This document shows, piece after piece, positions 50,837 to 53,089 of a stretch of 64,000 bases of DNA. Each line of letters starts with the position of its first letter. Positions within the stretch are counted from its first letter, which is position 1. The stretch covers positions 30,628,001-30,692,000 of the forward strand of contig OZ116698.1 in the NCBI GenBank assembly GCA_964199315.1, given 5' to 3'. Under the pieces are notes generated by a model, which saw only the letters and a program-made list of their open reading frames with translations, was not told the DNA's origin and made no database searches. Origin of the DNA: Orbicella franksi. Taxonomy: Eukaryota. Made by a program: the position numbers and the translations under genes.

Positions 50837-51155
50837 TTCATTCAAGGAGATACGTAAAATGTAGCCTGCATATAAACTGCTGGCAAGCGGGTTTTTCTGT
50901 AAGGGTCACATAGACGAATGTTTAGCAATCTAAAGGACTCTATGGCCGAGTAGGAAATGAGACGAGACTGTCTTGTGCATGCCACGGCCATGTCTAGTCC
51001 CATTCCTCTTTGGGCTAAAGCGTCTGGCATCTCAAATCACTTAGCTTAGAATGAAATTCCGAACTTAACTAATCGAGTATCCAGTGTGACCGATATGCTC
51101 ATTTGTCTTCTGTCTTCATGTCTTTCTTTAGATTTTTCTCAACCTCACTAGTTTC

Positions 51156-52033
51156 ATGATGAAGGGAATTTGCCTTGTTTTCCTAACACCTACTCGTAAT
51201 TTCAGCGACATCTCTTCCTCGAGATGGTGAGTGCTATGTAACTGTTTTCTGATCGTGATTCCTTTTGCATTCTTTATGGAACTTCTCCGCGGTTTAGGAA
51301 GCGAGTAGAGATGAACGTGTTTGTAAGTAAGTAAACAAGTTAGTAAGTAAACACTTCTACCGAGGGTATCACCTAGTATAGTGTACAGTACTAATAACTA
51401 AACTTGTGGCCCTCGATCCAAAATACTATTTACTAACATATGGCTATAACATTAAAATGTACGTCACTCCGTCATGACGTCATTTCGTCAGTCAGTCAGT
51501 GCGTCAATAAATCAGTCAGTCAGTCAGTTAGTTAGTCAGTCAGTCAGTCTATCAGTCATTCAGTCATCCAGTCAGTCAGTTCGTAAGACCGACCGTCAGT
51601 CAGTTGGTCAGGCTGTCACTCACTCAATCAGTCCGTTGGTCAGTGAGTCAGCGAGTCAGTCAGTGAGTCGGTCAGTCAGTCAGCCCGCCTATCAGTTGGT
51701 CAGTTAGTCAGTCAGTCAGTCAGTCAGTCTGTCTGTCAGTCAGCATTCAGTCCATCAGTCAGTCAGTCAATCAGTCAGTAAGTCAGTCAATAGGTAAGAT
51801 GCAAATCCGCATTCCGTGATTTAGTCCAAGAATCTTGAGACGCATCATCCGTTTTCTTAAGTGAATTTTTTTCTTTCTTGCCAGAGAAATTTCATGCTCT
51901 TTTTAGAGATTTCGATCTCATTAAAGACGAGAGAAAACCTGCACCCAAGGTCTACGAAGACCCGGTTCCGGCCTGTGAAATGGAATGCATGAACCATAGC
52001 ACCTCAGACTGCAAGGCAAGATGCTGTAGGTGA
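51156..52033 (+). pseudogene. Small secreted Cys-rich prepropeptide gene (72 aa) with one +1 frameshift in this sequence
   Basis: Coding exons 51156-51226 and 51885-52033, with strong acceptors (tctttctttag, ttctttcttgccag) and donor gtgagt. Removing one base at ~51187-51190 gives MMKGICLVFLTLLVISATSLPRDEKFHALFRDFDLIKDERKPAPKVYEDPVPACEMECMNHSTSDCKARCCR*. A 3'UTR intron follows (52047-52309), then AATAAA at 52395 and 52407. Confidence 0.7.
51484..51792. repeat. Imperfect (TCAG)n microsatellite, ~300 bp
   Basis: Visible tetranucleotide array; it lies inside the intron of the Cys-rich peptide gene. Confidence 0.95.
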
Positions 52034-53089
52034 AGCACTTCTTCAAGTAAGTTTACATCTTAGCAACCAAGAAAACTGAGTCTGAGTACAAAAACGAAAA
52101 CTTTGAGTTTAAACGACTCGATTCAAATCAATAGTACTGATGCAAACTTTATAAAGACAATAACATCAAAATGTTTGATTTGACTTTGTAAAAGAGAATG
52201 CAAAAAAAGTGATTACTCGTCATTCAAAGTGCATTAAAGCATCATGAATAGCTAACATAAAATTTCGGTTGATGGAAAGTTTTTCATCATTCATATATAT
52301 CTTTTTCAGGTTTCTGCTGTCCAATAACCATTTCAAGTGCTGCTGAGCCTAGCCAAAAATTAAATTAGTCAGTCTTTGAGGGTTCCTTCTGTAGAATAAA
52401 CTTGAAAATAAAGATAGTTACTGTTCAAAACTTGTTTTGATCATGAAAGACAAAGGCATGTATGAAAAACAAATTGTACATACATACAGGCAGGCTAGGC
52501 AGCTATTTACCTGATCAAACCTGAGGATTTCTTTCCCTATTTAGACTGCTTCATTTTTTTCAATTTAAGCACTGTAAGAGGGCAAAGCGTTGGTAAGGTC
52601 CGTGGCAGGTGGGGATTTGGATAATTTACATACTATAATGTGACTGAAAAAGAGCCAGACCAACTCCTTGTATTCGTGCAAAGAGATCCCTAACATTATC
52701 ACTCCCTCCCTTTCAGGTACTTTTAGCCATCCTGTTCTCGTAGTTTATGAATATTTCCTCTGCCCCATATCCGAGTCACCTGACTGAAGATCGCGACAAG
52801 AGGTTTTTCTCGTGGATCCAGTCTAAATTGCCACTTTATGGCTTCATTGTCGTATGGCTGTATGATAGCTTTAAAGACTTCCTATCTAGTCTGAATCAGA
52901 GCGCACGAGTTTGTCGGCCAACAGCCGTTAATTAAACTTCTTTAAACATCTTTTGAAGAAAAAAACACCACACTATGAAATTTTATTGCTGGTGAAACTG
53001 ATTCAGGCTTAGTTGATTGCTCAAGTAAAATATTTTCCTTCCATTGAAAAACAAATGGTCAGTTTTATAAACATTCCAGTACAGTTCAG

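Follow-up and report, generated by a model that had tools for sequence, protein, structure and literature searches.

A small cysteine-rich gene, very probably a pseudogene in the coral Orbicella franksi, with intact orthologues in two related species

Between a laminin-like gene and a protein-kinase gene in the genome of the coral Orbicella franksi lie two short coding exons that are joined by strong splice sites, would together specify a small cysteine-rich (Cys-rich) secreted precursor, and are out of frame with one another. The stretch of DNA analysed, referred to below as the window, comprises 64,000 nucleotides (GenBank assembly GCA_964199315.1, contig OZ116698.1, positions 30,628,001 to 30,692,000 of the forward strand). 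The element in question, at 51132-52412 on the plus strand, had been noticed in a sequence-only reading, which described it as a hidden prepropeptide gene of toxin or antimicrobial type carrying a single-base frameshift. The locus raises the question of whether this is a gene at all, whether it is broken in the animal or only in the assembly, and what its product would have been. Comparison with further assemblies from the same species and with three related species indicates that a real gene, which in this species has become a pseudogene, is very probably what the window holds. Overall, the explanation that we favour, with moderate confidence, is a lineage-restricted mini-protein with one terminal module of the cysteine-rich domain (CRD) type known from cnidarian stinging capsules, pseudogenised here.

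The small gene and its frameshift

Long contigs of three related species, designated L007, L008 and L009, were reached through homologues of a laminin exon, and two of them (L008 and L009) provide the reference against which the small gene of the window is described. Its features are as follows.

51132..52412, plus strand: whole transcription unit of the small gene, recognised by its frames, its signals and a three-exon layout recurring in L008 and L009; the limits are those of the sequence-only reading, and the 5′ end is unmapped
51027..51155, plus strand: upstream block (promoter-proximal region or 5′ untranslated region, UTR), conserved with L008 and L009
51156..51226, plus strand: exon 1 from start codon to donor; in the intact relatives it encodes the predicted signal peptide and the first residues beyond it
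51227..51884, plus strand: intron 1 (GTGAGT...CAG, phase 1), at the same position in L008 and L009
51885..52033, plus strand: coding part of exon 2, charged spacer and Cys-rich tail, with the stop at 52031-52033
51974..52027, plus strand: Cys-rich C-terminal module, with five Cys in the window allele, whose third position is Ser, and six in assembly L012 (see below) and the relatives
52047..52309, plus strand: 3′ UTR intron (GTAAGT...CAG), conserved in L008 and L009 and present in all haplotypes examined
52310..52412, plus strand: exon 3 (3′ UTR), with two AATAAA signals, read in the sequence, near its end (~52395-52412)

Alignment by blastn begins at 51027 with L009 and at 51091 with L008, and immediately upstream of the ATG lies a motif common to all three sequences. 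From the ATG at 51156 the first eleven residues are signal-peptide-like, after which the frame turns hydrophilic and meets a stop at the splice donor, while a second frame of exon 1 supplies the remainder of the hydrophobic core and a small-residue motif, and continues up to the donor. Intron 1 closes with a long pyrimidine tract and CAG, ending at 51884, and from 51885 a frame with five Cys runs for 48 codons to its stop, 13 nt beyond which the 3′ UTR intron begins. The start-codon frame of exon 1 is not in register with that of exon 2, and if spliced as in the relatives would yield 23 residues only. This exon-1 frameshift is the one defect in the gene, none being seen in the exon-2 frame or in the splice sites; the splice sites, 3′ UTR intron and paired AATAAA signals reported in the sequence-only reading are all present.

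A (GTCA)n microsatellite of ~300 bases occupies part of intron 1 in the window (51487-51789), in L008 (~1650-1890) and in L009 (~1020-1380); within the window species, haplotypes differ in it by one 4-base unit.

L008 and L009 each have an orthologue at the syntenic place, oriented alike and upstream of the laminin gene, in which one frame spans both exon-1 pieces. The positions of the two introns are shared and their sites canonical, the stop and each donor and acceptor recur, and the three-exon layout as a whole is retained at ~75-87% nucleotide identity. When the exons of the relatives are joined as they stand, by the shared introns only, the result is an uninterrupted precursor of 71-72 residues. 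The hidden small gene for a secreted Cys-rich precursor that had been proposed at 51132-52412 is thus borne out by features at those positions and by layout and intact frame in the relatives, and the intact-frame homologue with conserved Cys for which the sequence-only reading had called is found in both contigs. Neither the window nor the relatives' 16 kb loci yielded a paralogue of the small gene.

The pattern of change between these sequences is that expected of coding DNA. The frame is open over 71-72 codons in L008 and L009 despite differences at ~15% of coding positions. Their non-coding parts show 25 indel events in 867 aligned columns, whereas the coding part shows one (an in-frame terminal codon) in 219 columns, where 6.3 would be expected (Poisson P(≤1) ~0.013). 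Each Cys of the window is invariant across the four sequences aligned. The ratio of non-synonymous to synonymous substitution rates (dN/dS) is ~0.4 in the signal part and in the Cys part and ~2 in the middle (17 changes), and for the exon-2 coding part of the window it is 0.41 against L008 and 0.34 against L009; nucleotide identity is 0.80-0.90 in exons versus 0.65-0.83 in introns. Because the three-exon layout recurs in two species, in a single frame and with coding indels depleted, the layout of the small gene is, as judged from these comparisons, beyond chance.

Exact look-up of the neighbouring open frames, together with a scan of JGI metagenomes, identified four assemblies of the same species beyond the window, with the following identities to it.

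L001 (ENA ERZ27245412): 99.1%
L012 (Ga0126338): 99.2%
L013 (Ga0126339): 99.2%
L018 (ENA ERZ922785): 98.9%

The five same-species assemblies derive from coral-associated samples or match such samples. The L018 record is a ‘coral metagenome’ (taxid 496922) of BioProject PRJNA269585, which covers black-band mats from the scleractinian corals Pseudodiploria strigosa, Orbicella annularis and Goniopora fruticosa and from a pool of Montastraea cavernosa and O. faveolata (PMC5394123). Exon 1 is identical to that of the window in L001, L012 and L018 and carries one substitution in L013, and the same two-frame arrangement, hence the frameshift, is present in all five; these copies come from different samples and differ mutually by ~0.7-1.1%. 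As five independent assemblies share the same exon 1, the frameshift is a true null allele of the species rather than an assembly error. The sequence-only reading had named a null allele and an assembly indel as the two possible causes of the frameshift that disables the gene; the former is upheld and the latter falls away.

Beyond exon 1, no damage to the splice sites, stop or poly(A) signals is seen in any of the four copies that extend over them. Four haplotypes differ at four sites of the exon-2 coding part, all within the last eleven codons and so concentrated in the Cys module. Replacements occur at three of the sites, namely Cys/Ser at the third Cys position, Ser/Leu and Arg/Gly; one haplotype also has a Leu to Arg change in the hydrophobic core piece of exon 1. 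A single frameshift, clustered replacements and an exon-2 dN/dS of 0.34-0.41 therefore suggest that the gene in this species is probably a recent pseudogene, now drifting and probably fixed.

The predicted precursor and its alternative explanations

The intact precursor is best read as a predicted signal peptide of ~19 residues, a charged spacer of ~34 residues and an 18-residue module with six Cys. The opening 19 residues of the relatives are strongly hydrophobic, with a mean hydropathy of ~2.5 over residues 4-17, and small residues occupy -3 and -1 relative to position 20, a rule-of-thumb test for signal peptides. The spacer of 34 residues is highly charged and balanced, with 6-7 Lys or Arg against 7 Asp or Glu and a net charge of 0 to -1; the window species and L009 have an RK pair followed by Pro, and in L008 the pair is replaced. 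The acidic propeptide ending in a dibasic site that had been proposed from the window is accordingly not retained. The net charge of the Cys-rich tail is -1 in L008, +1 in L009 and 0 in the window. Neither a Gly-X-Y run nor a polyproline stretch occurs in the precursor, which has one module only. In the L008 orthologue there is in addition a seventh Cys (~1500-1506, minus strand), which lies in the spacer upstream of the six-Cys module.

The C-terminal 18-19 residues of the relatives carry six Cys in the pattern C-x3-C-x3-C-x3-C-x3-CC. A regular-expression search of the six-frame translations of the 157 kb compared found this exact pattern in L008, L009 and L012 only, and in this gene only. 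The window's own copy has five Cys and does not match: the third Cys position is Ser in the window, L001 and L013, and Cys in L012. Since the Ser of the window stands opposite a Cys in both intact relatives and in L012, the frame of the family has six, and the five-Cys frame C-x3-C-x7-C-x3-CC is, on sequence grounds, a derived state of a dead gene. Two suggestions built on that allele-specific frame, an odd fifth Cys available for dimerisation and an analogy with helical hairpins, find no support in the comparison.

The Ser at the third Cys position of the window allele (51998-52006, plus strand) also creates an N-x-S sequon, which the six-Cys allele lacks.

Three alternatives concern the existence and state of the gene. 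That the frameshift is an assembly or sequencing indel, the gene being intact in the animal, would agree with the commonness of single-base indels as assembly errors and with the intactness of the rest of the gene, but is scarcely credible given the same exon-1 length in four further assemblies, three of them with the same letters, which come from other samples and other methods (MEGAHIT-style k141/k127 contigs and JGI metagenome contigs), each with single-nucleotide polymorphisms elsewhere. Nor is the gene at all likely to be functional here through another start, another donor or ribosomal frameshifting. The exon-2 frame, open in all five copies, the intact signals in the copies that cover them and an exon-2 dN/dS against the relatives of 0.34-0.41 could be read in that way, yet the exon-1 frame compatible with exon 2 has stops upstream and no start codon, the start-codon frame spliced like the relatives ends after 23 residues, and the replacement polymorphisms, one of which removes a Cys while another puts Arg into the hydrophobic core, agree with relaxed constraint. 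Somewhat better, but still decidedly improbable, is the view that the segment between the laminin and kinase genes is regulatory DNA or yields a conserved non-coding transcript, its open frames being due to chance, an account consistent with the failure of the searches to return a protein relative, with exons only modestly better conserved than introns, and with a whole-coding-sequence dN/dS of 0.84. Against it stand the 71-72-codon frame kept in two species, the depletion of indels in the coding part alone, the invariance of the Cys, the six-Cys frame of the relatives and L012, and the conserved signal-peptide-like start; moreover L007 keeps both neighbouring genes without the segment, which is consequently part of neither.

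The remaining alternative concerns the product, and holds that a venom or antimicrobial prepropeptide is cleaved at the dibasic site to release a disulfide-stapled helical hairpin of ~31 residues. The order of signal peptide, charged spacer and small Cys-rich C-terminus would suit such a peptide, as would the RK pair in the window species and L009, the fast middle part (dN/dS ~2, 17 changes), which is seen in many effector peptides, and the two short helices over the Cys region in a low-confidence structural model. Cationic antimicrobial peptides in general carry a clear net positive charge. The peptide is not cationic, however, either in its tail (net -1 to +1) or in its spacer (0 to -1), which leaves the toxin or antimicrobial label of the sequence-only reading weakly grounded. 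The RK pair is replaced in L008 and elsewhere followed by Pro, and the five-Cys frame is derived from six evenly spaced Cys, the second and third pair of which are just three residues apart. Neither Pfam nor the Protein Data Bank (PDB) gave a match to a toxin or antimicrobial family, and Foldseek returned nothing. Taken together, these observations make a venom or antimicrobial role unlikely, and a pseudogene of a lineage-restricted Cys-rich mini-protein is the account carried forward here.

Neighbourhood and loss of the gene

The small gene lies between the laminin-like and kinase genes, ~1 kb from the start of the former and in divergent orientation to it. The neighbouring features identified with Pfam are as follows.

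49712..50101, minus strand: first coding exon (Laminin_N) of the laminin-like gene, with its ATG at 50101; used as synteny anchor
48534-48893, minus strand: Laminin_N exon of the laminin-like gene
10274-10681, minus strand: Laminin_G of the laminin-like gene
57590..57979, plus strand: protein-kinase exon of the next plus-strand gene

The laminin-like gene (~10274-50101, minus strand) occupies most of the window, and the kinase gene runs on the plus strand from ~54.8 kb, where the blocks conserved with L007 begin. In L007 no trace of the small gene was found between its laminin and kinase genes, both of which are kept. An origin of the small exons as 5′ exons of the downstream kinase gene was considered and ruled out, as L007 retains the kinase and laminin genes without the segment. 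Distances between laminin exons place L009 outside the group formed by the window, L008 and L007. As L009 falls outside that group, the absence in L007 and the frameshift in the window species represent two independent secondary losses. The best reading of these distributions is a lineage-restricted, unannotated three-exon gene of robust-clade reef corals, limited to a few related species, in keeping with the unnamed coral family that had been proposed: no Pfam family and, in the collections searched, no protein relative was found, and orthologues are present in two related corals.

The missing segment extends beyond the small gene. A 3.7 kb stretch of the window (~50707-54444) is without counterpart in L007 (~5650-7120), though both flanks align, and is a presence/absence difference between close relatives. 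Downstream of the small gene, a block at ~53090-54336 contains an open frame of 177 codons (53424-53957) that matches nothing in Pfam; the block matches L008 twice in opposite orientations (5739-6069 and 6968-7567), between the small gene and the laminin gene, and looks like a repeat or mobile sequence. Within the span of the laminin-like gene there are also a tRNA-Thr (GGT) at 14437-14511 (plus strand) and a weaker tRNA-like match at 14139-14210 (minus strand).

The CRD-type module and comparison with known systems

CRDs are the signature domains of nematocyst-wall proteins (PMC3145756), and are defined by six Cys in the pattern C-x3-C-x3-C-x3-C-x3-CC (PMC4863159, PMC4195985, PMC3145756), which in group 1 minicollagens is given as CXXXCXXXCXXXCXXXCC (PMC4195985). 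The module of the intact relatives has this pattern exactly. By our own rough estimate there are 1820 placements of four Cys within an 18-residue span with fixed ends, and because of this number an exact match to the CRD signature is unlikely to be accidental, although convergence is possible. When the 24-residue tail of L009 was compared with all PDB sequences, the top match was the NOWA CRD 2hm3_A, ungapped and with the six Cys in register, at E = 0.95.

Several results weigh against the favoured explanation, including assignment of the peptide to the CRDs. The NOWA match is not significant at that E-value, and in a search with a profile of three tails it was lost, leaving chance matches to cereblon at E ~1.3. 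No candidate protein relative was obtained with the exon-2 piece or with the four-sequence alignment (the two exon-1 frame pieces were searched separately), and a phmmer scan of 1.84 billion representatives gave no match at E up to 0.001. The structure prediction that had been called for was run on the exon-2 piece with single-sequence AlphaFold; it returned short helices at 26-36 and 42-46, with a predicted local distance difference test (pLDDT) score of 60, so that confidence is low and the fold unsettled. A Pro at position 10 or 11 is conserved in CRDs, whose loops are Pro/Gly-rich (PMC4863159), whereas the coral module lacks such a loop and has no Pro between the first and last Cys in any copy. 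The minicollagen propeptide has 4-20 residues and a characteristic KR end; the coral spacer has 34 residues, and its dibasic pair is RK and is missing in L008. The whole-coding-sequence dN/dS between L008 and L009 is 0.84, from small counts, and since the gene has been lost repeatedly, it is dispensable.

Other matches in these searches were set aside. A plant defensin-like PDB entry at E = 0.012 is at chance level, with its Cys out of register, as are cereblon entries at E ~1-10; Foldseek comparison of the low-confidence model with the PDB gave no match. In Pfam, at E up to 10, no family was found for the window piece, L008, L009 or L012, ShK included.

Membership of the CRDs is therefore only partly established, and the putative functional link rests on the Cys pattern. 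A wall or cross-linking role of CRD type in the intact relatives is put forward as a tentative possibility. In such a scheme, the precursor would enter the endoplasmic reticulum via its signal peptide and be routed to the growing stinging capsule, with the charged spacer serving, like its counterparts in other capsule proteins, for sorting or as a pro-region. During wall hardening the terminal module would exchange disulfides with the CRDs of wall proteins and, having one module and no bridging domain, might cap chains or compete for partners, tuning the density of cross-links rather than building the network. More speculative, and on balance rather unlikely, is the further idea of a free-standing single-module CRD of robust-clade corals that serves as a natural chain terminator or tuner of the capsule disulfide network and is gained and lost between close species. 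Whatever function existed would have been given up in the window species.

If the CRD reading is true, the intact precursors would be the smallest natural carriers of the module that polymerises stinging-capsule walls, and would offer a natural test of the in vitro finding that single or free CRDs limit polymer growth; they would also exemplify how rapidly an accessory capsule protein can turn over among closely related reef corals, by birth, deletion and pseudogenisation. For annotation, the locus illustrates that two-exon mini-genes are missed by protein databases, and that what looks like an ‘assembly frameshift’ may be a true null allele of the whole species. Taken for this genome by itself, the significance is modest, namely an unannotated pseudogene.

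Among small coral precursors, there is a parallel in general design with the SCRiPs, which are likewise taxonomically restricted, begin with a signal peptide, may have a convertase site and end in a Cys-rich domain, and one member of which has likewise been reported as frameshifted (PMC2652719). They differ in having eight Cys in the motif Cx6-7Cx4-6CPx3-6Cx4-6Cx5-6CCC... (PMC2652719), which the coral frame of six Cys at a spacing of three does not fit; the earlier view that the peptide is neither a SCRiP nor an ShK peptide holds on this motif and on the lack of an ShK match in Pfam. Helical-hairpin peptides have two C-x3-C motifs on a pair of antiparallel helices linked by a loop, with four Cys forming two staples; an apparent pairing of this kind is seen only in the five-Cys allele, whereas the family has four consecutive C-x3-C steps, and the two short helices predicted here come from a model of low confidence.

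Comparison with the nematocyst-wall proteins is closer. In nematocyst proteins a charged propeptide comes after the signal peptide (PMC4863159, PMC3145756), and the coral peptide shares with the minicollagen and NOWA CRDs the six-Cys spacing (at the family level), a cnidarian host and placement of the module at the extreme C-terminus of a predicted secreted precursor, where a charged stretch follows the signal peptide. An intron falls within its propeptide region, as has also been reported from a myxozoan minicollagen. A minicollagen proper has a central Gly-X-Y collagen helix bordered by polyproline and by a CRD at the N- and at the C-terminus. The coral peptide has no collagen Gly-X-Y run, polyproline or second CRD, and because it lacks the collagen and polyproline parts, the product is not a minicollagen. 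The ‘minicollagen-like’ proteins of Nematostella, which show minicollagen features incompletely, provide a precedent in an anthozoan for reduced or partial members of the set of CRD proteins, though, compared by description only, they keep part of the minicollagen architecture.

CRDs are also found on NOWA, on Cnidoin and on CPP-1. Within the Hydra capsule wall, CPP-1 and Cnidoin carry a CRD at each end of a long polyproline or silk-like domain, while the coral peptide possesses just one module and lacks a structural domain. Polymer formation in vitro is inhibited, in a dose-dependent manner, by GFP to which a single N-type CRD has been fused (PMC4863159), and free CRD peptides block the formation of Cnidoin fibres in vitro. 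What CPP-1 and Cnidoin have in common with the candidate coral module is the use of CRDs as portable cross-linking modules on proteins that are not collagens.

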